From assembly GCA_025558095.1 (NCBI GenBank), contig JAIVFI010000040.1:1-64000 (forward strand): a stretch of DNA of 64,000 nucleotides, in the 5' to 3' direction. The first letter of the stretch is position 1. Each line of letters opens with the position of its first letter. The notes below the pieces were generated by a model. It was not told the DNA's origin. It made no database searches and saw nothing but the letters and a program-made list of their open reading frames with translations. A program made the translations under genes and the position numbers. Shown here piece after piece: positions 12,325 to 31,411 of the stretch. Source of the stretch: Hyaloraphidium curvatum SAG 235-1. Taxonomy: Eukaryota; Fungi; Monoblepharomycota.

Positions 12325-12943
12325 TCACGCGGCGCCCAGCGCGATCCCCGCGCCCGCCCAATCGTCCTCGGTCCACGGCGAGGCGAGCAGGAAGCCGTCC
12401 CCCCGCATGCCGGGCGGGGTGATTGGCGAAGGCGGCGCGGGCGCGGGGTCCTGCATGGCCGCGGGGGCATGTTGGGCGAAGAAGGGGCCCAGGGGCGGCA
12501 GGGGGCTGATGTCCCGGTAGGCCGGACGGGGCCAGGGAGATGACGAGGGGGGCTGCGGCATGAAGAGGAAGGCGAGATGGCCCGGCTGGGGCGCGGCGGG
12601 GGGTGTGGCGGGGGGCGACGGCAGCGGCGCGGGCGGGGCCGTGCGCAGGGGAGAGAGGAACACCGGCGGCAGCGTGAAGCGCAGGGGGGCGGCGGACGGC
12701 GGCGGGGCGGCCAGCGGCAGCGTGACGCGTGTGGGGAACGAGGCGGGCGAGAGCGCCGGCGCGGGCGGGGCGCGGGGGCCGCGGCAGGCGGCGCACGGCC
12801 TCCGGGGAAGGCCGTCGAGGCGCCTGCGGGCGCACTGCCGGCTGCGGGGAGACGAATCAGCACTCGCGGTCTCCGGGCGACGCCGCCACGCACCAGCGCC
12901 GCGCGGGGCCGGGGCTGCCCGGGGACCGCGGGGCTGACTCCAT
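12325..12943 (-). CDS. Small Pro-rich protein with CxxC-x12-CxxC and FPxxVxLP motif (cluster gene 1)
   Basis: Removing intron 12842-12893 gives ..ARRCRQCARRRLDGLPRRPCAACRG..SFPTRVTLP..MRGDGFLLASPWTEDDW. Confidence 0.72.
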
Positions 12944-13857
12944 GTTGCTCCGTGCGCGGCCTGCGGGGCTGCAGCTGGCTGCGGCGAACGCGCGATTGCG
13001 GGACGGCGACGGGCGGCGAGATTCGGGTTGCCGAACCATACCGCCCGCCAGCCCGCCGCGTGCGGACCGGCCTGGACCGCGTACCCTTCCCCACTTGTCC
13101 CCTTCCCCCAGCGCCGAGCATCAAATGGCCGCCCAGCACTGGTAAGGAACGATGGCGGGCCGAATAGGTTCGGGTGGGCGCCGGGCGATGCGCGGTGTGC
13201 AATGGCCAAGGCCCGTCACCGGACACCGCCCTCGGCCCACTCGGCCCGCCCGTCCCGCGCCGGGGAGGAATCGGATCGCCGTCCGAAGGTTCACCGAAGC
13301 GCAGTCGCCGGGTCCGATTCTCGTGCGAATGGCGAACGCCGCGCCGGCGCCGGCCGGCGGGGCAGACCGGCTGGACCCGCGCCGTGCCCGACCCGCGGTC
13401 CGCGCGACCCGGTTCGCAAAGCTACAAGACGCCCATCGGGGTCGAAAGCCGCGCCGCGTACTATGCGGGATGGCGGACAAGGCAAAGGCGGCTTCTTGGG
13501 CTTCGTCAAGGGGAGATCGGTCCCTACCGGAGGCTGACGCCGGCCGATGCCAACACCGACCTCCGGGCCCCGCCCGCATCCTTCCCCGCGCGTTTGTCTC
13601 CATCAGGAATATCCTGTGCAGGTGCCTTGTCTCCCCCTTTTGTGGTCTTTATTGCGGACGGATGCGCGGGTCGCGCGGCGATGCGATTCCGCGGTGCCGC
13701 GCGCGGCTCAACTCCGGGTCCTGGAGGCGGGGACCGGCCGGCAAATAGCGTCGCCGGGAAGCCCACCGATAGGCTTCGTAGCTGTGCCCCGTGCGCTGCG
13801 GCAGCGCCTGAAAGCAGCTCGATTCTTCAGAAGGAGTCCGAGGAAAGGGGAGAGGAC

Positions 13858-14463
13858 ATGGCCTGCCTGTCGTGGTGCGCACCCCGCCCGCCCGCCCGCT
13901 CTTGGCCGGCCGGTGCTGACGTCCCACGCAGCCGCAAGCTCAAGCGCAAGTGCGCCGACCGCGGCGGCCCGTGCCTGCGGTGCCGGCGCAAGGGCCTCGA
14001 GTGCTCCGCCGGGCGCCGCCCACCCCCCGCGTCGTCGTCGGCGGAGGAGACGCGGCCCGACGGCGCGCAGCAGGCGACGCCGCTGCCGCCCGCGGACCTC
14101 GCCGGCGCGCTGCGGCTGCTCTTCGCGCACCCCGTGTTCCCCGTCGTTTTCCCGACCGTCGTCTCCCTCCCCTCCCCCGCGCCGGCCCCCTTCCCCGCCG
14201 CCGCACCGGCGGACCCGGCCCCGGCGCTCCGCTCGCCCTCCGCCGCCTCGGAAGAGACACTGTACGACGACCCGTGGGCGCCCTTCCTGAAGGCGGAGGA
14301 GGCGCTGCACCGCCGCGCAAAGGGCAAGGGGCCCGTGCCGGCGATGCGGAGGGGCGAGGACCCGTTCCTGTTCCCCGCGGCGGCGGATGGCCAGGAGGAG
14401 GAGGCGGGGTGGTGGGGAACGGTGCCGTGGGACGGCGTGGAGATGGGCGGCGCAAGGGGCTAG
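13858..14463 (+). CDS. Minimal Zn2Cys6 transcription factor (cluster gene 2)
   Basis: Removing intron 13875-13931 (branch GCTGAC) gives MACLSCRKLKRKCADRGGPCLRCRRKGLEC, then VFPTVVSLP and an acidic Trp-rich tail. Confidence 0.85.
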   Translation: MACLSWCAPRPPARSWPAGADVPRSRKLKRKCADRGGPCLRCRRKGLECSAGRRPPPASSSAEETRPDGAQQATPLPPADLAGALRLLFAHPVFPVVFPTVVSLPSPAPAPFPAAAPADPAPALRSPSAASEETLYDDPWAPFLKAEEALHRRAKGKGPVPAMRRGEDPFLFPAAADGQEEEAGWWGTVPWDGVEMGGARG

Positions 14464-15191
14464 GAGGGGGGGACAAGGCGGACGGTGGAAGTCAAGGAGC
14501 GCCCTGGTGCCGGCTCCGCGTGGCATGCGGGGCCGGGAGGGACGCAATCCGGGCCTTTGGACAGCTGGCACGCGCGACCGCTATTCCGGTCGGATGGCAT
14601 AGCTAGTGTATGCAGCGGCAGCGCGGCGACCGCGGCAACGAGAAGACATCGATTCCGCCCTCGATCCCACCGACCTTCTTCCCACCGTTCGCGGGCTCCG
14701 CAACGATATCGCCGCGGGGCTTGATCCCCAGTCGGCGAGACGGATCCGCGCCTTCCACGAACGCCATCCACGTAGCGTATACTCAACACATCCCAACTTC
14801 CGTCCAAACCGCTCCCCGCTTCTTGGCGGCCCATTCCCCATCCACACGCCGGTTTCCCCCGGCGCGCCCGGCGATCCCCCCGGGCGATGCAATTCTTCGG
14901 CCGCCGGACGGATAATCCGGTCGGTGGTCGCGGGAGGAGAAAGCCCCCGCCACCGCGACCAACGTGGGGACGCAGCGGGAGGTGCGATGGCGCCTTCGGA
15001 CGCTTTGGAAGGGGGACGAGGGGTAGGTGGGTGGGCGCCCCTGGTGCAGCAGGGGTTTTGGAGATGGGGAGCGACGACGCAGTGAGGACCGGGCTCGCGA
15101 CGGGCGCACCGTCGCACCACCGCACGATACCCGGCGGCACGTCTCGGCGCATCAGTCCCATCCGTCGGGACCCCGCGGCGGATTCGTCGCG

Positions 15192-15193
<2 letters not shown>

Positions 15194-15223
<30 letters not shown>
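15194..15223 (+). repeat. (GTCGGG)n microsatellite, G-quadruplex capable
   Basis: gtcggggtcggggtcggggtcggggtcggg in intergenic DNA. Confidence 0.8.
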
Positions 15224-16038
15224 ACAGTTGGCGAGTCACATGCACCGCCCCAAGTGCCCCGTAGCCGGCGATCGCCCGTTTTCCGCGGGTCCGGGAACCA
15301 GATGGGGCAGCGGACCGGGCGGCAAACTCCCTAACGGTCCGGGTGTTCAACTTGGGGGCCGTTCGGACCCCGGATGGCGGCGGGCAAGCCCGCTCGCCGC
15401 CCGTCGGCGAGGCGGGAAACGCGGACGGGGGTCGGACGGCGCCGTGGCGTGCGTGCCGCCCGGATCGGACGCGCGGGATAGATAGTGGGGGGTGCCGCAA
15501 TGCAGGTGGCACGGGCGGCGCGGGGCGGCGAGGGCCCGGAGTCGGCGCGATCGGACCAGGAGCTTGGGACAGGGGGGAGTGGATGGGTCGGGTGACCGCG
15601 CGACGACGCGCTGCGTCCCTTCCAGCCAGCGGATGTTTCGTGGGCCGATGGGGCGGGGCAATGTGCCGAAGTGGATCGGCCACAGCGGCCGCGGCCGTGC
15701 GCAAGGGCACTTGCGGTTCGGCGACGTTCGGGTCTGGAGCTCGGAGCACAGCATGGCCGCCTATTCCGAACGAGAGTCGACGGCGGGCCGGAAGCGCAGG
15801 GACGGCTGCCGGAGGGGCGCCGGGAGCAACGGCTGGGCGGGTGGCCACCATTTGAGGCGGTCCGGAGGGCGATGCATGGCTTGGCGACGGGCGGAATACG
15901 CCTCGGCCAGTTGGTGCAAAAAAAGTCTGGGACCCGAATGGCCGGCTTCTTCCCCAATCGACCATCATCCATCGCCAAACCTCCAGGAGCCTCCCCGGCA
16001 GGAAGAACGCGTCCGCCGCGCCGCGCCAGCGAACGAAA

Positions 16039-16855
16039 ATGGCACCCTGGTAAGCACCGTCAGCGGCGGGCGGACGGGCAGCGCTGACGCGCCCGCACAA
16101 ACAGCGCCGGCTGCCGCCTCATGATCCGGCTCGGCCCCACGCGCGAGAAGTGCGGCCGCTGCAAGGCCAAGGCACGGCTGCGGCAGGAACAGCGCGCGCA
16201 GGCACGCGCGGCGAGGCCCGCCCCGCCCGCGCCGGCCGTGCCCCGTATCTCCTTCCCCACCGTCGTCGCGCTGCCCTCCCGACCCCCGGCCGCCCCCCTC
16301 CCCGCGTCGGCCGCCCCTCCGCCGCCACCGCGCGGCACCGTCGCCCCCCGGAGTACCCGCGGCGAGGCCTATCCGACGCCCCGCACGCCCCCTTCGCCGG
16401 GGTCGCCGCCCCTCCCGCTCGACGAGCTGTTCCCCCGAACAGCGGCCCACCTGCCCGACGCCAGGCCGGCGAAACGGCCCCGAGGCGCCGCCATGGCGCT
16501 CCATGCACCGCTGGAATGGACCTTCCTCGCGTGGAACCCTCCACACGGCCCTTCGGCGGACCCGCTGCCATCACCTCCCGCCGAGGATCCCCCCTCCCTC
16601 CCCCTCCCTCCCGTGGCCCTGTTCCCCCCCGCACCCGAGGACCTCCCCCCCGCCCTCTCCCTCCCGTTCGCAGCACCCGCGCTGCCCGCCCTGCCGGAGG
16701 ACGCGCTCCGCGCCGCCGACGCGTACCTCCTCTCGTTCCTCGCGGCCCGCACGGAACAGGCCGCCGCGTGGGACGGGGTGATGCGCGGGGACGGGTACCT
16801 CTTCGCGGGAACGGGCGCCGGGGAGGAGGAGTGGGTCGCGACGGGGGCAGCGTGA
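16039..16855 (+). CDS. Small Pro-rich protein with CxxC-x12-CxxC and FPxxVxLP motif (cluster gene 3)
   Basis: Removing intron 16050-16104 (gtaagc..acag) gives MAPCAGCRLMIRLGPTREKCGRCK..ISFPTVVALP..MRGDGYLF..EEEWVATGAA. Confidence 0.78.
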
Positions 16856-18392
16856 CCGGCCCCCCCACCCCCGGAGGCGGTACGGGTCCGGCAGGTTGGA
16901 CGACGGCGCGAGCGCTGCGCGGGCGCGGCGCGGGGAACAGGGCGACGCATGGCGCAGGATGGGCGGCGGGAACGCCGTGTTGTTCCCATGGGGAAGGTGT
17001 ATACCGCGGAGCGCGAGAACGGGGACATGCCACGTCAGGCCGGAATCCGCCGTCCTCCCCCCGCTCCGCGCTCTTATCTGCTTTTCCCTTCATTCGATCC
17101 CGTCCGCCCCGTTTCAGGCGTCCCTCCCGTTCGGCTCGGGCCCGCCGCGGACCTCCAATCCTTCGCGGGACGTCAAACCGCCCGCTGACCCTCCCGCGCA
17201 TGTCCGCCCCCCGATCACCGTCCCGATGCACTCCTCCCCAACCAATCGCCCGTTCGGGCACCCGGGATACGGTCCGGCCGGGCCTCCCCGGACCGGCACG
17301 CGGGGCGGCCGCCCGCCACCGCACCGCGCCGTCCCCTTTTCCCCGCCCCATCCTCCGGCGGGCCACCATCCCGGCAATTTCACGGGGATTCCCAAACCCA
17401 GCAAACAAGGACGACGGCGTCGGAGGGGCCAAACGCGCGTGGATCGGGCGTCGGACGGCTTCCGTCGGAGCGGGCGCGGGCGGACGCCGACGGCGGCGGA
17501 TCCGATCGGAACCGGATGCACCCGTCGCGTTTGTATACCGAATGCGAATGCGGAGCCGTATGGACGGGACAAAGTGATGCGCGCGGCGCCGGGGAGGTGG
17601 GGCGGCCGCGGTACGGCCGTGCGCCGCGCGCGTCCCCGCCATCCTGCCGGGCCGCGGCCGCACCGGAGCCCCGCTCGATGCCATCCGATGGCATCCGAAG
17701 CCCGGAAGCCGGGCGGCCGGGGTCGCTTGCCGCCGCGGAGGGTTGGGGACCGGCGCGTGGGACGGGAGGGGTCGCCAGACGTCGGGAAGGGGCGGGGCAT
17801 GCAAACCCGTCGTGTTCATCACGTTCCGGATAGCGGCACCTCCGTTTCGCGCCTTTGCTGGGAAGCAATGTCCGGTCGGGACGGCGGAGGCGGGGGACGG
17901 CGGTCGGCGAGGCGGGCAGAACGATGGCCGCGTTAGGGTCCCCGGGCAGAGGGCGGCTGGTGGTGCGCGGTGGCCGTCGCACGCGAACCAAGGGGAGCGC
18001 AAGGATTTGCCGGGTCCGCGTGGGACGGGGGAGTGCGAGCCGGCGGACGTTTCGTGATGGTGGTTTTGCCCCGGGTGGACGGAATCGGAGGCGGTTGATC
18101 CATTTCCAGTTGTTTTTTCATCGGCGGCCGAAGCTGTGCTCATCCGTTTCGGGCACTTTGCCGACCGCCGGCCACCGGCCGTGCTGACGGTCCGATCCGT
18201 TCTGCACCTTTGCCCACCCGCCGACCTCCTGCGAGCCCGTGCTACCACCCGGGGCGGAGAACAAGTGCGTGGTCCGCCGGGGTCCGTGCGCAACGCCAGC
18301 CAACGAGGGACGCACATCTGGACTCCGCGGCCGCCTTCCGTCCGCCTCCCTCCGACACGCGACAGGCCCGCCCCCGCCCGCCCGCCCCCGCG

Positions 18393-19010
18393 ATGAAGCA
18401 GCGCGCTTTGCCCCGCGCGCGCCGGCACGCCGCGGCGCCCGCCCCGCCGCCCGCCATCGCCTTCCCGCGCGTCGTCGTCATCCCCGGCCTGGCCGCCCTC
18501 GTCCCCGGCCCGGCCCCGAACCGGGCGGCCCCGCAGACCGTAGGGGAGCCCGCGCCCGCCTCCGTGGCGCAGCACACCGCCCCGCTGCTCTCCCCCGCCT
18601 CCGACTCCCCCCCGCCCGCCCTCCCCTCCCCCACAACACACCCCGGCCCCGCCGACGCCGACCGCATCGCAGACATGTACGCCTCGTTCCTGCGCGCGCA
18701 GCACGCCCCCCTCTCCGCGCCCCCGGCCGGCATCTGGGCCCTCGAGGGGGCGCACCGCCGCGCGGCCTCGGCAGCGGACGACGGGCTCTCCCTCTCCTCC
18801 TTCGACACCGCGAGCCACTCCTCCGCGGACCCCTTCCTCGCGTGGCCGTCGCCCGATCCGGATGTCCCCGGCTCCCCGAACGCGGGGCCGGACGGCGTCC
18901 CCGGCGCGCGGGACGGCGGCGCGGCGGACGGGCTGGACGCGTTCCTCGCCGACTTTTCCCTCGGCCATGCGCTCGCGCGGGGTTGGTCGGGCGCGCTGGA
19001 GGGCCTGTGA
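18393..19010 (+). CDS. Small Pro-rich protein with FPxxVxIP motif, no Cys finger (cluster gene 4)
   Basis: Basic N-terminus MKQRALPRARR, IAFPRVVVIP, acidic-aromatic tail (DPFLAW..LDAFLADF); gene-like codon use. Confidence 0.65.
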   Translation: MKQRALPRARRHAAAPAPPPAIAFPRVVVIPGLAALVPGPAPNRAAPQTVGEPAPASVAQHTAPLLSPASDSPPPALPSPTTHPGPADADRIADMYASFLRAQHAPLSAPPAGIWALEGAHRRAASAADDGLSLSSFDTASHSSADPFLAWPSPDPDVPGSPNAGPDGVPGARDGGAADGLDAFLADFSLGHALARGWSGALEGL

Positions 19011-19791
19011 GTCACGGCGGACTGCGGGGATCGGACGACCCGGTGGGGGGGGCGGTCTTTGGATGCCGTCCCGCGGGAGGGGAGGCGGGAAAACGTGGGC
19101 ATGGAAAGTGGTGGGATACCTATGTCATTTGTAACATTGGAGATGGACGATTGGTGCCGATCGAGCCCGTGGCTCGACCTCTGCCCGCGGCCGGATCGTC
19201 CCGTTTCCTGGCTCCCGCGCCCGCCCCGAACCGGCCGGGACCTTCGGATCGGACATCCATCGAGCTGCTCCGACGGTCGGGAGCGCCGGCGCGCGCATCG
19301 GCCGCCCGGTGCGAAACCGGATCTCGAGGGCGGTGCCCGGCGGGGAGGCGGACGCGGGGTAGGGGGTGGCGGACCCCCCGGATCGCGCATGGCCCGCCAC
19401 CGGCACGCTCGCGGGATTGCATTCGCTGTCCATTGATCCGCAATCCACCGTAACCGAGGCGGGGGGCTGCAGATGCCGGCGCGGGTGGGTGTCCCCGGCC
19501 GCCGCCAGATTTGCCGCCCCCCGCATCGGCCACTGGCTGGACCGCATACCGCAGGCCACGCCGCCCCCGCGCCTCGACGTTCCGACGCCGGCCACCGACC
19601 GCGGTGCCCATCCGACCCGAGCGCGCACGGCGAACCCGCTCCGAGCCGCGATTCGCCGCGGCCGCCCGTCTCCCGGAGACGCGGGGTGCGGTCCGGAACG
19701 CCGACGTAGGTCGTTCCGATCCCGATCCCAGCCGCGCGCAGATCGAACGCCCCACTGCCCTGTGCCTTGCGCCCCCCGCACGCACCGGACG

Positions 19792-20454
19792 ATGCCCAAG
19801 TCGCCCGCCCGCCGCGCGCCCCGCGGGTCGCGCGCCGGCCACGCCGTGCGCCGCCGGGCCGCGACCCCGCCACACGGCGCCGCGCGCAGCATCGCGGGGA
19901 TCACCTTCCCCCTGCGCGTCTCCCTCCCGCTGCCCCCCTCGTTCCCCTCCTCTTCCTCCCACCCTCCTCACCTCACCTCGCCTCCGCACTCGCCCGGCGC
20001 GACCGACCCCCTCCCGGACCCCATCGTGCCCCCCGGGGACCCATCGGCGCTCGCCACGGCCCTCGACTCGCGCTTCGCCCTCTCCCTGCTCGCCTCCTCC
20101 TCCTCCCTCGACGCATCGGTGCTGGGCTTCGTCCCGGACCCCGTCGTCCCCGCGCCCTCCTTCGTCTGCCTGTCCCCCACCCCCTCCTCCTCCTCCTCCT
20201 CCGACCAACCCCCGGCGGAAGTCCGCCGCACGGGGTCGGATTCCACCCTCCGCTCGCCCAGCCCGCGCTCCGGGTCCCCGGGGGGCGGCGACCCGTTCGG
20301 GTTCGGGTTCGGGTTCGGGTGGCAGGGCGGGGAGGGCGACGACGGGGTGGATTGGGACGCGCTGCTGGCGTGCGACTGGACGCTCGCCCCCGCGGGGCAG
20401 GACAGCGGGGGCGCGGAGCTGTTCGACGTCGGGAGCTGGGTGGGTGCGCGGTGA
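19792..20454 (+). CDS. Small Pro/Ser-rich protein with FPxxVxLP motif, no Cys finger (cluster gene 5)
   Basis: Basic N-terminus, ITFPLRVSLP, tail DDGVDWDALLACDW..ELFDVGSW. Confidence 0.65.
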   Translation: MPKSPARRAPRGSRAGHAVRRRAATPPHGAARSIAGITFPLRVSLPLPPSFPSSSSHPPHLTSPPHSPGATDPLPDPIVPPGDPSALATALDSRFALSLLASSSSLDASVLGFVPDPVVPAPSFVCLSPTPSSSSSSDQPPAEVRRTGSDSTLRSPSPRSGSPGGGDPFGFGFGFGWQGGEGDDGVDWDALLACDWTLAPAGQDSGGAELFDVGSWVGAR

Positions 20455-21165
20455 TGTGGGGGGCTTGATGTCGGGCGGGAAGGGACGGGGATCAGGGTGT
20501 GATCGGGATCTGGGGGGCCCAGGAGGGGGCGTGGGTGCGGAGAGGGCGGGTGTGAAGATCTGTGTCCGCTCGTCAACCTGTTCTACCCGTTCCGTGGCCA
20601 AGTGTGTGGCCTGTTCGGTGCGGTCTCCCACGGCGTCCTCCAGGCTTCCGGTTTCCGCGCCTTCCACCGCCCTCTGCCCCCCGAAGCCGAGCCCGGTATC
20701 GGGGCACAAAGTAGGCGCGGACACGCATTTATATCCCGTAACATCGCGGACGGGGGCGGACCCTCCCCCGGACCCCGGGGTGTGGCGAAGCAGGGGCGGT
20801 CGCGGTGCCCGTTACATCGTCGTGGGGCGGCGACCCGTCCCTCCAGCGCGACCAAGGCCGCGCAGCGTAACGTAAAGCGGAACCTGGGCTCGCTCATGGA
20901 GAACGGCGATCGCATCGCGTCTTCTGTCCCCACGGGCATCACGTGCCCTCCCCCCCGCCCCGCGGGCCCTGCTCCCCCCGCCGTCCTCCTCATCGATCGA
21001 CCCTGTTTTTCCCGTGGATTGGCGGGGGATCGATCGACGGGGGGCGGGGGCCTCGGCCGGCCGTGTGCGGAGCATCTGCGATCCCGACCCCAGGAAACGG
21101 CCCGCAATCTCCCACCTCTTCCCAACTCCGAACCCCGCGACCTCCTCCTTCCCGCCCGGGACAAA

Positions 21166-21817
21166 ATGGCCTGCGTGAGTCCTCCCCCTCCCCATCGGGA
21201 CGGCGCGGCGCAAGCTGACCCGCGGACCGCAGTCGGCCTGCCGCAGGAACAAGCGCCGGTGCGACGGCGACGGCCTCTCGGCGTGCGCGCGGTGCCGCAT
21301 GCGCGGGATACCGTGCGACGTGACGGCGCCCCCCGAACCGAGGCGGGACAGGACGAGGGAGAGGGAGAGGGAGCGGGAGAGGAGGAGGAGGATGGAGGGC
21401 GGGGAGGGGGCCAGCCCCGCGTCGTCGGCCTCGTCCGGGGCTTCCCAGGTCTCCCTATCCCGCCCACCGGCCTCGTACCCTTTCGCGCCCCGCCCCGCGG
21501 CTCCCCCCGCCGCCGCGTCCCGGGAACCGCTCCCCCTCGCGGGGCTCCCGCCGGGCGCGCGGATCGTGTGCTGCGACCTCGGCGCGGGGCCGGTGTGGGT
21601 GGTGCTGGCGCCCGGGACAGCGACGGTGGCGCATGCCGATCCGGGGGCGCGGGAGGAACGGTGGGCGGAGGAGGAAGCGGATGAGGAGGAGGAGGAGTTC
21701 GAGGAACGGGAGGGGGAGGGGGACGAGCAGCCGGGGCTGGCGAGGGACGCGGACCCGTACGTCGGGTGGGCGCTCGCGGATGCGGAGGAATGGGACGCGG
21801 CGGCGGAATGGGGGTGA
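21166..21817 (+). CDS. Minimal Zn2Cys6 transcription factor (cluster gene 6)
   Basis: Removing intron 21175-21232 (gtgagt..gctgac..cag) gives MACSACRRNKRRCDGDGLSACARCRMRGIPC; Glu/Trp-rich tail. Confidence 0.85.
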
Positions 21818-22649
21818 TCGGCCCCCGAGCGGCGCGGGACTCTGGCTTTGGGGATCGGGCGCCGCACGGCACGGCGCGTTGACTTGGGCGGGGCTGTGGG
21901 TCGGATCGGCGCGGGCGGCCGCGTTTGGAGCGCGGGGAGCGCGACGTAACCTTACCATGTTGGCATTCTCACCGTTGTAAACTTGGCTCGAGGGACGAAT
22001 TTGGCTTCGGGGTTCCGGGCTCGCCGCCGGGGACGGCCTGGGAAGCCTCGCGACCCTGGCAGGCTTGTCTTCAAAAAGAGACAATATCGGGGACAGAAAA
22101 GCGATTGTCACGCCGCATACATTAGCCGTTCCCGCGCGAGGGTGGTTTCGGCGGCCCGACCCCCGTTGCATCCGGCATCGCCCTTTCTTTGTGTGAAGTT
22201 CATATCCGCAGCACCAACGTCGGCCCGCACATCCCGGACCGAGCACCCATCCCGCCGTCTCCGCATGCGCACCAACTGGAGATGACCCTGCGCGCGTTCC
22301 GCGGGTCTGGAAGCGACGATCGCGGCCGACGACCGGGGGTACTCCAGCCACGGCGGCTGGTCTCGCTGACGCCCGGCCGCGCGCGTTCCCCGGCCGGTTG
22401 CGCACAGAACACCGGGCCGTCCCGCAGGAAGCTTCCCCAGAGCTTTTTGATGGACCTGCGGGGTGGCCGACGGGCGGATGTCGGGGGGAACGGGCCCGTT
22501 CCGCGGGCTTGGGACGCCGGCTGCGAGGCTCCGAGGACCCCCGGCAATCCCAGCCGCCCCCGGGCATGGTGCGAGCACCAAAGCCAAATCTCCGCGCGTC
22601 TCACAGCCATTCCCCGCTCAGGCAACCCCCGCGCGCCCCTCGGCGCACC

Positions 22650-23600
22650 ATGGACCCGCTCCCCGACCCGTCCCGCGCCCCCGCCCGCGCCGGCCCCGCG
22701 CCCGCTGCGCCGCAACCCGCGGTGCTCGCACCAACCCCGGGCGGCCCCCCTCGCATCTCTCCGCCCCCGCAGGCATTATTCATCCCCGCCCCCGGCCCGA
22801 TCCCCGCCCCCGCGCCCGGCCGCCCCCGCCACGCGCACGCGGCCGCGATCCCGGCGGAGCACTACTCCCGCGGGGGTGCGGAGCGGTTCCGCTGCGTCGT
22901 GGGCGGGAGGCTGTTCGACCTCGATGCCGCGCTGGGCGCGGCAGAGGTGCGCGAGGGCGAGATGCGGCGGTGGGCGCACTACGCGCGGCCGCTGCGGGAG
23001 GGGCCGGGAAAGGAGGGCTCGAGGGGGCGGTTCGAGGTGCGTCCGGTGCTGCGGCGCCCGTAATGCATGCATGTGCTCATGCGCGCCGCGTGGCAGCACG
23101 AGTTCAACGTGCAGCTGTGCAAGCTGGTCACCCTGAACCCCTGGCTCGCCGGCGAGGACCGCGGCATCCGGAGCCGCATCGTCGAAGCGTACCGCAACAG
23201 CCACCCTGCCGGGCTGTTTGCGAGCCGCCGCGCCAAGCAGCGCATCCGGCGCGACCGGACGCGGTCCGCGGGCGCATCGATCGCGGGCAGCGCGGCGTCG
23301 AGCGCGTCGAGCAGCCCGACCATGGCGTGGGCCCATGCTACGTGGCCGCCGGTGCCGTGCATGCATCCCGATACGGTGGTGGGCAGCGCGCCGGCGATGC
23401 TGGTGTTTGGCCCGCCTCCTCCGACCGCGCTCGCCGGTGCGCCGGCCTCCCCGCCGGCCGCGCGTTCGCCCCCTTGCGTCACCGTGCCCTGGACGATGCA
23501 CCGCGCGGTGCCCATCCCTCCGAACCGATCCCCTTCGCTGGACATGCTCGCCGCCGTCGCGCTCGGGACTGATCGCCCTCCGGACTCGCGCGCACAGTGA
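22650..23600 (+). CDS. Hypothetical Pro-rich protein, possibly regulatory (cluster gene 7)
   Basis: Intron 23037-23096 joins ORFs 22398-23063 and 23067-23600 (RFE|HEFNVQLCKL); basic patch RRAKQRIRRDR; C-terminal LDMLAAVAL. Confidence 0.68.
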
Positions 23601-27248: not shown

Positions 27249-30200
27249 TCACTCCTCTCCCGAGCTCCCCGGACCGACCAGCGGGATCTCGACCAGATCC
27301 TCCCGCGCCTGGAGCCCCTCTGCCGAACATCCGCGCGTCAGCCCGTCCCTCCACCCCCGCCCCGCACGGAACCCACCGATCTCCTTGACCGACAGCCCCG
27401 CCAGCGACCCCTCCAGCCCCCTCTCCACCGCCCCCCTCGCCCTGCTCTGGTCCACCATCCCCTTGAACACCCTGTGCAGCTCCCTGATCCACAGCCCCCA
27501 GCTGTCGGCCATGGTTCCGAGCCAGTTCAGGCACGTGAGCACGTCCTGCTCCGCGTCCTGGATCAGCGACGCGTAGCCGTCGGCGGCCTCGCTGCCCGGG
27601 GGGGAGCGCGCGAGCAGCTCGCGGTACCGGTTCTGGATCGCCAGGTGGAGGCAGCCGATCCGGAAGGCGGTGTTGACGTAGCCGATGCCGCAGTACATGA
27701 GGGAGGGGTTGTAGGCCATGATGTTGTCGAGGTTGCGCGTGTAAAGGATCGCCTGTGGGTAGCATTGTGTCAGTACTTGTTTTGCACCGGCCGACACAGC
27801 GACCCACGTCCGAAAGGCTGCTCGTGAACTTCTCCCCCAACCACCACTCGTCCACGATCCTGTGCATCTCCGTCACCGGCAGCACCCCGAAGCTCGTGTC
27901 CAGCTCCAGCCTCAGCGCGCGCATCTGCACCATGTTGAGTATCGGCAGGAAGCAGTAGCCCCAGTGCCCCGCCTCGGCGTGGTAGTAGGGCGCGACCTCC
28001 GAGACCTCGGCGCGCTCCTCGGCCGCGCGGTAAGGGGCGGGGAGCATCTCCATGCTGTCGGCGATGGTACGCCGCAGGCGCTCGAGGATGGCGTGGAGCT
28101 CCGCCGCCTGCGGGGAGGAGGAGGGGGGTGGCAGCGTGGACGGGCTTAGCCCGTGGGCCTTGAGGCGCTCCAGGAGGTCGTCCACCTCCTCCCGCAGCGC
28201 CCAGAAGCACACCGTGGCGGTGACCTCGCCGAACACGGGGGCCAGCTTGATCAGCGCGGCGGCGCGGTCGGGGTCGGAGGGGTCCATTTCGATCCAGGAG
28301 GTGTAGTCGGTGATGCGGAGCGGCGAGGGCGGGTAGGCGTCGGGTTCGAAGTCGTCGCGCGCCGAGAGCACGTCCCACACGCGGAAGGGACACTGCATCC
28401 GCACGTCGTTGCAGTCGCGGTAGGTCATGTTGGTCGCGCTGTGGCTGACCGAGCGAGCGAAGCTGTCCCAGAACATCAGCAGTCCGGACCAAGTTACCTT
28501 CAAGGAACGACGCACCTGCCAAGCATCACCAGTTGGAACGTCACCCTCCTCCTCTGCTCCCTCTCGATCCACTCTGCCACCCTATCCTCCCTCGACCCCA
28601 GTATCGGCCCGGCCGGCTCCCTGTCCATCTTCCACCTCCTCACCAGCGCAAACGCCACCCCGTACATCCCCCTGCCGAGCTTCCCCATCCCCGCCTGGAT
28701 GCACCACGTCGCGAGCAGCACGAGCCCCACCAGCGCCTCCATCTTCCACCGCGGCACCCTGTCCGGCCCCCCGGGCGGCGGCGGCGGCCCCGCGGCCTCG
28801 TTGTAAAGCTGCACCACGTGTCCCCTGCACAGGGCAAACAGCTCGCCCTCGAGGCGGCCGCGGTTGTCGCGGACGGAGGGGTGCAGCGCCCAGATGGCGC
28901 CGTTGAGGAGGACCGAGGCCAGGAGGAGCGGGTGCGCGGAGGGGTAGGTGCGTACGAATGTGTGGGGGTGCACGATGGGGAGCATGGGGTGGTAGCGGTC
29001 GAAGTAGAGGGCAAAGAGCTCGAACATGGCGGCTGGCGGGCAGCGGAGCGGTCAGCGCGGTGGTCGCGAATAAGGGCGGGGAGGAACTCACGGTCCTCGA
29101 GCCAGGTGGCCTTGCCGAAGCGCGGGCCGAGTAGGTTCCATCCTGTGCGGATGGGCGGCTCGGCGGGCACCTCGGACCTGGCCTCGGCGACCGAGACGAA
29201 GTCGTCAAAGTCCATCTCCATAGACGCCCCCGACGACGCGGGGGGCAGGTGGATCTTGCCCGGCCACCTGCGCGCCAGAAAGTCCGCCATGCGGTCCGCC
29301 GGCGGCGCGTCCGAGGGGGGCGAGGGGGTGTTGGGGTGCTCGGGGCCCGAGAGGCCAAATGCCGATGCGGGGACGGAAGGGAAGGAGTAGGTCACAGGGT
29401 GCTGCCCCGCCGCGAAGCCGACGAGGTCCAGCTGCTGCGACGGGCTGGGTATGGAGACCGAGGAGGCGGAGGAAGGGGAGCCGAGCGCGTTCGGGGCCAT
29501 GAGGCCGGCCGTGGCCAGGCTGGGGGTTCCGCGGGCCGACTTGATCGAGCCGTCGCCCGTGGTGCTGGACGGGACCGAGTCGGTCCCTTCCACGAGCTCG
29601 AAATCGTCCCCCGAAGAGGGCGAGTCGTCCGAGTCCTCATCCGACTCATCGCCCGAGCCCGACTCGCCCGGGCGGGCCCTGGAGCGTTTCCGACGGCCGG
29701 AGTTGGAAGGCTGGCTGGAGGCCTGCCTCGGGGTGTTGGTTTTGCGGTCCACAAAGACGCACACGAGGCCTCTGCAGGGCGGGAGGCCGTTGGGGCGGGG
29801 CGGCAGGCGGAGGAAGGTGGTGTCAGCGGTTGCCAGAAGGAGCGATACGCCGGGAAACGCGGCCGCCAGAATATTCCATCGCGTGCGAAGATATTCCGGC
29901 GGCTCTGGAGCGCGATGGAGCCCCCTCGACACGGCGATGGCGGCCGCCCGGCACGGCCGCCCCCTGCAGTCCCCGTCGACGGCCCCCGCCCCCCCACGCG
30001 ACGCACCTCGTGCGGCACATCTCGCAGGCGTCTTTTCCGTCCTCGGGGCCCTCGCAGAAGCGCTTCGAGGCCCTGCAGTTGACGCAGGCGATCTTGCGGC
30101 GCTCCGGCTTGGGCAGCGGGTCACGGTGCAGCGGGCCCTGGGTCGCGGCCCTCTGCGGCGCGCCGTCGTACACGCACACGACGCCCTTCAGCTTGCAGCG

Positions 30201-30341
30201 GCCGCACATCGGCAGCGCGGTGTCGCAGAAGCGGCGGTCGTCGTGGCAGCTGCGGCACGCGCGCTTCTTCGTGCGCGGCGGCCCCGCGGCCGCCCCGCGC
30301 CCGCCGCCCGCCGCTCCGCCGTCCGCGGCCGCCGCAGACAT
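27249..30341 (-). CDS. Transcription factor with two Zn2Cys6 clusters and a fungal TF middle homology region
   Basis: CRSCHDDRRFC..CGRCKLKGVVC and CVNCRASKRFC..CEMCRTR|GLVC (intron 29772-30006); LYFDRYHPMLPIVHPHTF; EREQRRR. Confidence 0.88.
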
Positions 30342-31411
30342 CGCTGCCGCCGCCCGCCGCGCGCGTGCTTCGCTCGTTCCGACTCGACGCCGCCGAAAGC
30401 CCTTACGATCGCCGATGGCGCTTCGCCCGCAACGCCGCTCGCGTCGGCCCGCCCGATCGCGCCTCGGAGTTGCTGGCCGCGCGCTCGCCGGCCTCGTTCC
30501 CGGGTGTCCGGCAGCGGAGGGTCTCCCGTGCCGCCAGGGTCGCTGTGCGGTTCGGGACGGGATGCCGCGGGCCGCAGGTCTGGGCCGGCCGACAGCCGGA
30601 ACAAACACCGCCCACAGCTCGCCGGGGCAGCCGCCGCACCCGCAGCCCTCGCGTTGGTCGGACGGCCTTCAATCGCCTTCGTTAGCTCCGCAGCCAGGCT
30701 CCCCGTGCGCATCCGCCGCAACTGGCAACCGGAGCAATTTAGTCTCCGCCACACCATAGATCCAGGCCAAGAACCCGTTGCGGCACGCAGTTTCCGCCGA
30801 GCCGAACCGCGTCCCGATCCCAGCCCCGCCGTCCGCGTCGCCGCCCCCAGGACGCTGGGATGCGGAGGCATCGCCGATCCGATCCTGTTCTGCTGGGGGC
30901 GAAACGGCGCCGTCACCGTGCCCTTGCATCCGGCCGCCCGATCGTCGGGGTCTGTCGTCCGCTTCGGGCGACGTTTCTCCGACTCCCGCCCACTCCATTT
31001 GTCTCCCCCCTCCGCGGCCGATAGCCGTGCATACTGTTCACGGCAGCTGCGCGGGCGCAAATCATGCGGAAGGGACCGCTTACGCGGCGCGTTCCAGGGT
31101 CTCCCGCTGGATCCCGCCTTCCATACCGGGCGGGATTGCATCGCCGCACCGCCATGCCCTCGCGAATATTCGCCATCGGGCTGCCCCGCGTACTGGCGCC
31201 AGGGCTGCGTGCGGGGACACATCACCGCGGGACCGACAGTGCGATGCGGCCGCAGCTCCTCGGACTTCGCGGTCGCCCGGGAGGCCGCCGCCGCTTCGGG
31301 GCAGCTGTAACGGGCGGCGTCGAAAACAGCGTGGCGCAGCGCCACGTCCTGTATGCCGACTCAGCTGGCGCGGCGGGACAACCGGTGGAACCCCCATGCC
31401 CGCAAAGGCCG

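Follow-up and report, generated by a model that had tools for sequence, protein, structure and literature searches.

Expressed or coding-like paralogues with complete, partial and lost Zn2Cys6 fingers in a tandem gene array of the early-diverging fungus Hyaloraphidium curvatum

Hyaloraphidium curvatum, an early-diverging fungus of chytrid grade, belongs to the Monoblepharidomycetes. In a window of 64,000 nucleotides from its contig JAIVFI010000040.1 (C40 below), we examined a 9.5-kb array of six small genes, g1 to g6 (positions 12325 to 21817). The six genes were found to be expressed or coding-like paralogues that share one layout, and the zinc finger at their N terminus is complete in two of them, reduced to four Cys residues in two and lost in two. 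We put at about one-half the probability that the array arose by lineage-specific tandem duplications of a small GAL4-type Zn2Cys6 activator gene, the copies of which have been diverging by birth and death. Five of the genes carry an eight-residue motif, FPxxVx[LI]P, which looks like the signature of a subfamily of ten zinc-cluster-derived genes in the H. curvatum genome.

The GC content is 62 to 78% in the window and about 73% in the genome, and open frames of hundreds of codons are present in all six frames, so that open frames alone prove nothing. A frame plot of the GC content at third codon positions (GC3) gave values of about 0.90 to 0.97 in exactly the six frames (182 to 253 codons) for which an earlier note on this DNA had proposed small genes; the spacers and the two alternative phases of each gene stayed at about 0.6 to 0.8. 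Gene g1 lies on the minus strand (12325 to 12943; 188 amino acids), with its ATG at 12943, exon 1 at 12894 to 12943 and exon 2 at 12325 to 12841, and its GC3 was 0.88 to 0.97 in its own frame. The remaining genes are on the plus strand. They are g2 (13858 to 14463; 182 amino acids; ATG at 13858; exons at 13858 to 13874 and 13932 to 14463), g3 (16039 to 16855; 253 amino acids; exons at 16039 to 16049 and 16105 to 16855), g4 (18393 to 19010; 205 amino acids; a single exon with a GC3 of 0.93 to 0.97), g5 (19792 to 20454; 220 amino acids; a single exon with a GC3 of 0.88 to 0.97 from about position 19760) and g6 (21166 to 21817; 197 amino acids; exons at 21166 to 21174 and 21233 to 21817).

Introns of 52 to 58 nucleotides were present in four of the six genes, all within the first CxxC of the finger and each with a GTRNGY donor, a GCTGAY branch-like box and a CAG acceptor. 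The short first introns had also been proposed in the earlier note. Spliced contigs with GT..AG borders confirmed them for g3 (intron 16050 to 16104; joint of 16048/49 to 16104/05) and g6 (intron 21175 to 21232; joint of 21174 to 21233). The intron of g2 (13875 to 13931) is the same as that in a public protein model (P0001; DFJ74DRAFT_694402, PF00172), which starts at an ATG upstream of 13858 and matches the translation of g2 exon 2 at 100%; the intron of g1 (12842 to 12893, minus strand) is predicted only.

Transcript evidence was obtained from the contigs of one public run (X1), compared over the 5.9 kb that hold g3 to g6. The spliced joints in g3 and g6 indicated that this run is RNA derived. 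Contigs covered g3 (16000 to 16196, 16357 to 16585 and 16722 to 16909), g4 (18364 to 19151) and g5 (about 19940 to 20530), and one contig spanned the whole of g6 exon 2. Word depth was low for g3 and g4 and was high for g5, at a level similar to that of g6, with zero contig depth upstream of g4 and g5 (17576 to 18363 and 19152 to 19939). Transcripts of the fingerless genes, on which the earlier note had staked its proposal, were thus found for g4 and for the part of g5 downstream of about 19940 but not for the bin that holds the start codon and motif of g5. Some X1 contigs matched the DNA up to 18487 or 18689, within g4, or up to 17004 or 17503, in the spacer, and then continued with 180 to 255 letters unlike the sequence; these loose ends may be chimeric assemblies formed via GC-rich low-complexity DNA or may be joins elsewhere.

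After removal of the introns, complete Zn2Cys6 clusters were read in g2 (C-x2-C-x6-C-x6-C-x2-C-x6-C) and g6 (C-x2-C-x6-C-x7-C-x2-C-x6-C), and both have the canonical spacing of C-x2-C-x6-C-x5-12-C-x2-C-x6-8-C. Individual exons, not joined spliced proteins, were used as the Pfam queries. Exon 2 of g6 alone scored 23.2 bits against Zn_clus (PF00172), above the gathering cut-off of 21 bits, and exon 2 of g2 alone scored 20.0 bits, as this query is without Cys1 and half of Cys2; the full public model of g2 carries PF00172. Genes g1, g3, g4 and g5 had no Zn_clus match at an E value of ≤1. Four Cys residues remain in g1 and g3 in the form C-x2-C-x12-C-x2-C, which is the old cluster minus Cys3 and Cys6. 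All four Cys residues and their spacing are identical between these two genes, and the loop between them matches at only 2 of its 12 residues, which argues that the four residues are still under selection; the unit is plausibly a single-zinc knuckle. No Cys finger is present in g4 or g5, and neither a Zn_clus match nor a C-x(5-14)-CxxC frame was detected on either strand of 16856 to 18392 or 19011 to 19791. The stepwise loss of the finger described in the earlier note was therefore recovered, with g2 and g6 complete, g1 and g3 at four Cys residues and g4 and g5 at none. A frame with C-x6-C-x7-C-x2-C was seen between g5 and g6 (20561 to 20640, plus strand); it shows no coding signal in GC3, contig depth there is low, and it is probably due to chance, the alternative being a relic finger exon. 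The array proteins end 150 to 230 residues past the finger, and no match to the middle homology region (PF04082 or PF11951) was found by Pfam in any of the six genes at an E value of ≤1.

One layout, a basic or Cys-bearing N terminus followed by a Pro-rich middle and an acidic aromatic tail, had been attributed to all six products, and the charge and composition of each agreed with it. The first 35 residues carry a charge of +4 to +10, the middle part contains 15 to 33% proline, and the last 60 residues have a charge of -2 to -21 with 5 to 9 Trp, Phe or Tyr residues, which is the composition of acidic activation domains. The tails are acidic and Trp rich in g1 and acidic and Trp/Phe rich in g2, and the acidic tail of g3 ends like that of g1; g5 has a Ser/Pro-rich middle and a Gly/Phe/Trp/Asp tail, and g6 has an Arg/Glu repeat and a very acidic Trp tail. 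Kinship between pairs was assessed from Smith-Waterman scores against shuffled sequences. The highest z value was 11, for g2 and g6. Genes g1 and g3 (z of 4.4) are colinear end to end, including a C terminus of the form MRGDG[FY]L...W...A, and g3 and g4 (z of 4.5) are colinear from just past the g3 finger to a tail block, D-A-[YF]-L..F...W.G; g5 and g6 had a z of 4.1. Three blocks are common to the family: the motif, a second block of the form D-P..P-aromatic-[LIV]-[RK]-A and a D-[PA]-[FY]-L tail. The tandem position, the common intron site and these three blocks together supported common descent, with g5 as the least secure member. A relationship of the second block to the first helix of the middle homology region was considered and was not significant (z of ≤1.6); by eye, FFAQHAP, LRAQHAPL and ALHAPL of g1, g4 and g3 resemble SYFAEQHPLIP of a long zinc-cluster factor on contig C23.

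The motif was read in g1 to g5, as had been claimed, in the forms SFPTRVTLP (g1; FPTRVTLP at 12715 to 12738, minus strand), VFPTVVSLP (g2; FPTVVSLP at 14149 to 14172), SFPTVVALP (g3; FPTVVALP at 16253 to 16276), AFPRVVVIP (g4; FPRVVVIP at 18462 to 18485) and TFPLRVSLP (g5; FPLRVSLP at 19906 to 19929), the last four on the plus strand. In g6 it is degenerate, with QVSLSRPP aligned to RVSLPLPP of g5. Genome-wide searches covered 31.9 Mb in 55 contigs. A degenerate back-translated DNA pattern produced 107 matches, compared to 87 for a reversed control, which is the level of chance, and a codon-aware pattern produced 30 matches, compared to 12 in the control; at the genome density of the degenerate pattern, about 0.03 matches were expected in the 9.5-kb array, in which 5 were seen. 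Inspection of nineteen other genome-wide matches identified one real zinc-cluster gene, on contig C17; all others fell in non-coding frames or in unrelated proteins. A 22-column profile built from ten instances recovered exactly those ten from the whole genome at an E value of <0.02, and the next two hits were non-coding frames that we regard as noise. All ten instances are in zinc-cluster-derived genes, five in the array, three on contig C26 and one each on C17 and C23, and in the five genes outside the array the motif sits shortly after the zinc clusters. These results clearly supported the view that the motif is not a generic feature of Pro-rich proteins, the other point on which the earlier note had staked its proposal; the notion that it is private to the array failed. 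A search of the other top-scoring Zn_clus loci excluded the motif as a general trait of the zinc-cluster genes of this genome, since 27 of the 30 loci were without it and the 3 with it were the C26 genes. The codons for the five invariant residues (F, P, V, L and P) differ at synonymous positions across the ten genes, which indicated a constraint on the protein and not on a DNA element.

The three relatives on C26 (C26a, C26b and C26c) encode small proteins, each with two complete Zn2Cys6 clusters, the motif in the form FPxxVxLP and an acidic Trp-rich tail that resembles the tails of the array genes. The trio is located at 526 kb (L004:1545-2375, plus strand), 536 kb (L011:4200-5105, minus strand) and 613 kb (L005:4264-5058, minus strand). 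The public model of C26b (P0004) is wrong in that it begins only downstream of the two fingers, and C26c is not modelled publicly at all; the latter gene also holds a variant of the motif, FPRLASLP, as a second copy. The other two relatives are long zinc-cluster factors on the plus strand, at about 523 kb on C17 (L053:1234-3099) and about 442 kb on C23 (L007:3066-5099), in which the motif lies about 40 and about 110 residues past the finger, respectively. No middle homology domain was seen in either long factor by Pfam.

Known short linear motifs were compared with the ten instances. The docking (D) motif of mitogen-activated protein kinases, (R/K)2-3-x1-6-hydrophobic-x-hydrophobic, was rejected, although V-x-[LI] fits its second half. 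Two or more basic residues within the six upstream positions were absent in g1 to g5, C26a, C26b and C23 and were partly present in C17; only C26c has the full basic cluster, with an R and then a K, five and three residues before the motif, and an RR inside it. The HP1 chromoshadow motif PxVxL was likewise rejected, because in the spacing found here, F-P-x-x-V-x-L-P, P is separated from V by two residues. By eye on the alignment, none of the PP1 RVxF, calcineurin PxIxIT, SUMO-interacting, eh1 or hydrophobic-x-x-hydrophobic-hydrophobic motifs fits all ten instances. No paper naming the motif or dealing with the family was found in literature searches, and we know of no description of FPxxVx[LI]P after a zinc cluster.

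Structures were predicted with AlphaFold2 from nine-member alignments, with low overall confidence (mean predicted local distance difference test [pLDDT] score, 63 to 64). The finger region of g2 was compact, and the second block formed a confident, amphipathic helix, at residues 116 to 130 of g2 (PFLKAEEALHRR) and at residues 86 to 103 of g4 (pLDDT of up to 92); two more helices were predicted in g4, at 112 to 127 and in the tail at 178 to 204. The motif and the Pro-rich residues that follow it were extended, with neither helix nor strand, at a pLDDT of 70 to 83 (73 to 83 for the motif of g2, which has no regular secondary structure), and the remainder of the proteins was disordered. The Pro-rich middle is thus predicted to be disordered apart from one or two amphipathic helices. 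The overall prediction resembles the effector region of a transcription factor that bears a short linear motif and does not resemble a folded enzyme or a structural protein.

The description of the locus as a tandem, transcription factor-derived and previously undescribed array was upheld. In word-indexed searches of 5.8 billion proteins, g2 found its own model only and the long C17 factor found itself only. A profile was also built from the nine small members with their fingers excluded and was searched exhaustively against 1.84 billion representative proteins; it detected nothing outside this genome, and its three matches were g2, C26a and the C26b model without both fingers. Genes g1, g3, g4, g5, g6 and C26c were not found even though they were among the training sequences, which indicated that public protein sets do not contain them; g4 and g5 were also looked up there as exact sequences, without a match, and a public model exists for one of the six array genes (g2). 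In the ESM Atlas, g2 reached generic Zn_clus clusters below 0.9 only, and g4 reached nothing. Within the reach of these searches, the family is confined to H. curvatum, without a close sequenced relative.

Under the reading of a duplicated and diverging activator gene, the composition of the proteins and their family suggest that the products of g2 and g6 would recognize CGG-type sites in DNA and that their acidic tails would activate transcription. In g1 and g3, the remaining Cys1, Cys2, Cys4 and Cys5 of the ancestral cluster may form a knuckle that holds a single zinc. The products of g4 and g5 would enter the nucleus by means of their basic N termini but would be unable to bind DNA, and they could modulate the family in the manner of microProteins by competing for the binders of the motif and the tails. 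More broadly, the four genes other than g2 and g6 would encode nuclear relatives with no DNA binding or an altered one, in competition for the motif's partner and for co-activators. The motif would most likely be a short linear docking site that is bound in an extended conformation by a shared partner. A more far-reaching version, which we regard as doubtful, holds that the four-Cys and fingerless copies are fungal microProteins that tune the FPxxVx[LI]P subfamily (g2, the double-finger C26 trio and the long C17 and C23 factors) by competing for one motif-binding partner and that CxxC-x12-CxxC is a novel fold with one zinc, to which the binuclear cluster gave rise when Cys3 and Cys6 were symmetrically lost.

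Several observations weigh against the reading of an array of diverging activator paralogues. Open frames of 200 codons arise easily at 73% GC, and GC3 periodicity fades slowly after the death of a gene. The X1 contigs carry neither strand nor transcript ends, and the first ~150 nucleotides of g5, with its start codon and motif, are in an uncovered bin (19743 to 19939) that may be a hole in the assembly. Pairwise similarity is weak, and a search of the genome with g2 detected no paralogue, not even its neighbours; g5, the similarity of which is the weakest of the set, joins the family mainly by its motif, layout and position in the array. For g2, no helix or coiled coil was predicted between the finger and residue 116 (mean pLDDT of 64, nine sequences), so that g2 and g6 may not bind DNA as classical dimers. 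Finally, no orthologue is available in other genomes, and purifying selection on whole genes therefore cannot be measured. Plain decay is a serious rival. In this view, g2 and g6 are the sole functional transcription factors, and g1, g3, g4 and g5 are duplicates with no role of their own that are turning into pseudogenes and are still transcribed from the promoters that they inherited. Decay would account for a divergence so extreme that ordinary searches detect no paralogue, for the missing public models of five of the six genes and for the low word depth of g3 and g4; open frames are cheap in such DNA, and a second tandem array of small zinc-cluster genes on the same contig attests to frequent duplication. 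We nevertheless consider it less likely, because g1, g3, g4 and g5 retain the motif at the protein level with synonymous variation, g1 and g3 have kept all four Cys residues and their spacing around a loop that was almost wholly replaced, g3 still shares C-terminal blocks with g1 and with g4, GC3 is as high in g4 and g5 as in g2 and g6, and the contig word depth of g5 is like that of g6. Taken together, the four Cys residues, the motif kept in the protein, the tails, the GC3 signal and the transcripts argue against simple dead copies.

The earlier note had preferred a self-contained module in which the motif is the interface that pairs DNA-binding activators with fingerless partners or competitors. 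In favour of this view, five of the six genes carry the motif, which is more conserved than any other part of them in protein and DNA alike, the genes lie close together, and run X1 contains contigs from each of g3 to g6; moreover, some other element of association would be needed in proteins without a classical coiled coil after the finger. Mutual binding is nonetheless improbable in our estimation, since g6, with a full finger, has no intact motif, and five genes outside the array, two of them long factors, carry it, so that the module would not be self-contained. A motif of eight residues that is flanked by Pro and predicted to form neither strand nor helix also resembles a docking site for a folded partner rather than a pairing interface. 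With the motif degenerate in g6 and present in long factors elsewhere, a shared outside partner fits at least as well as mutual binding. A very small probability was assigned to artefacts of the gene models, by which the fingerless genes would be the 3' parts of longer genes with upstream finger exons or the small frames would not be real products. The absence of a contig over the first 150 nucleotides of g5 and the loose ends of the g4 contigs at 18487 and 18689 point in that direction, but neither strand of 16856 to 18392 or 19011 to 19791 holds a finger-like frame, depth falls to zero upstream of both genes, the GC3 signal begins near the proposed ATGs and g4 aligns with g3 from its first residues, just after the g3 finger.

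The neighbours of the array are housekeeping-type genes unrelated to it (DUF1254/DUF1214, DsbA-like and ThrE-like), and a biosynthetic-cluster setting was rejected on this basis. No common promoter elements or repeats were found in the spacers of the array, which gave low-complexity GC-rich matches only; the sole meaningful DNA similarities were over the motif, inside the genes. None of the CGG-Nx-CCG, CGG-Nx-CGG and CCG-Nx-CGG spacings exceeded a z of 2.5 in the spacers, this being a weak test in DNA of 73% GC. Genome wide, at least 111 Zn_clus matches were detected, many of them as two clusters in tandem, and this double Zn2Cys6 architecture is unusually frequent in H. curvatum. Three near-identical tandem copies of another small Zn2Cys6 gene, with a period of 5191 bp, were observed 16 to 27 kb past the end of the window (C40:80236-90719); this gene encodes a Ser/Pro-rich protein of about 275 amino acids without the FP motif. 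The number of Zn_clus matches, the tandem doubles and this triplet indicated that duplication and reshuffling of the module are common in the genome. Miniature size is not unique to the array, as many short zinc-cluster genes, including the triplet, exist elsewhere in the genome. Within the window, a zinc-cluster factor with two clusters, the second split by an intron, and without the FP motif is encoded on the minus strand at 29700 to 30350, and a region that starts like a middle homology domain (LYFDRYHPMLPIVH) is found further downstream in another frame. A GC3-supported gene at 22647 to 23600 (plus strand) consists of two in-frame open reading frames separated by a single stop at 23061 to 23063, probably a short intron, and has neither a Pfam match nor a resemblance to the array genes.

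Zinc-cluster factors are the largest family of fungal transcription factors, and their birth, shrinkage and death are mostly known from the Dikarya. The array places full, half and lost fingers side by side at one locus of an early-diverging lineage, with the intermediates still expressed, and its conserved short motif may mark the docking site of a co-regulator. If the four-Cys unit binds one zinc, a route from the binuclear cluster to a simple zinc knuckle would be documented, and if the fingerless copies modulate their relatives, the array would provide a clear fungal case of microProtein evolution. The public proteome is without five of the array genes and C26c, and it holds C26b without its fingers.

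Compared to typical GAL4-type Zn(II)2Cys6 factors, g2 and g6 have the canonical six Cys residues, a basic stretch between Cys2 and Cys3, an N-terminal finger and an acidic C-terminal tail, and the other four array genes are their paralogues. The array proteins differ from such factors in their length of 182 to 253 amino acids, in having no middle homology region and, for g2, no predicted coiled coil, in the conserved motif after the finger, and in the reduction of the finger to Cys1, Cys2, Cys4 and Cys5 in g1 and g3 and its loss in g4 and g5. MicroProteins are small proteins derived from transcription factors that titrate their relatives and have no DNA-binding domain, such as Id versus bHLH, LITTLE ZIPPER versus HD-ZIPIII, and MIF. 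Similarly, g4 and g5 are small, have no DNA-binding part, share the motif and tails with finger-bearing relatives and derive from a transcription factor, as indicated for g4 by its colinearity with g3 and for g5, with its weak similarity, by motif, layout and position. MicroProteins are defined by a retained dimerization domain and by demonstrated non-productive complexes; in contrast, g4 and g5 have no recognizable dimerization domain, and the element that they kept is the eight-residue motif with amphipathic helices. In the aflatoxin cluster, the Zn2Cys6 activator AflR is encoded next to AflS, a non-DNA-binding protein thought to modulate it, and the array shares with this pair the placement of a putative zinc-cluster activator beside a protein predicted not to bind DNA. 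AflS is not a paralogue of AflR and belongs to a biosynthetic cluster, whereas the fingerless genes of the array would be decayed copies of the activator itself, set among unrelated neighbours.

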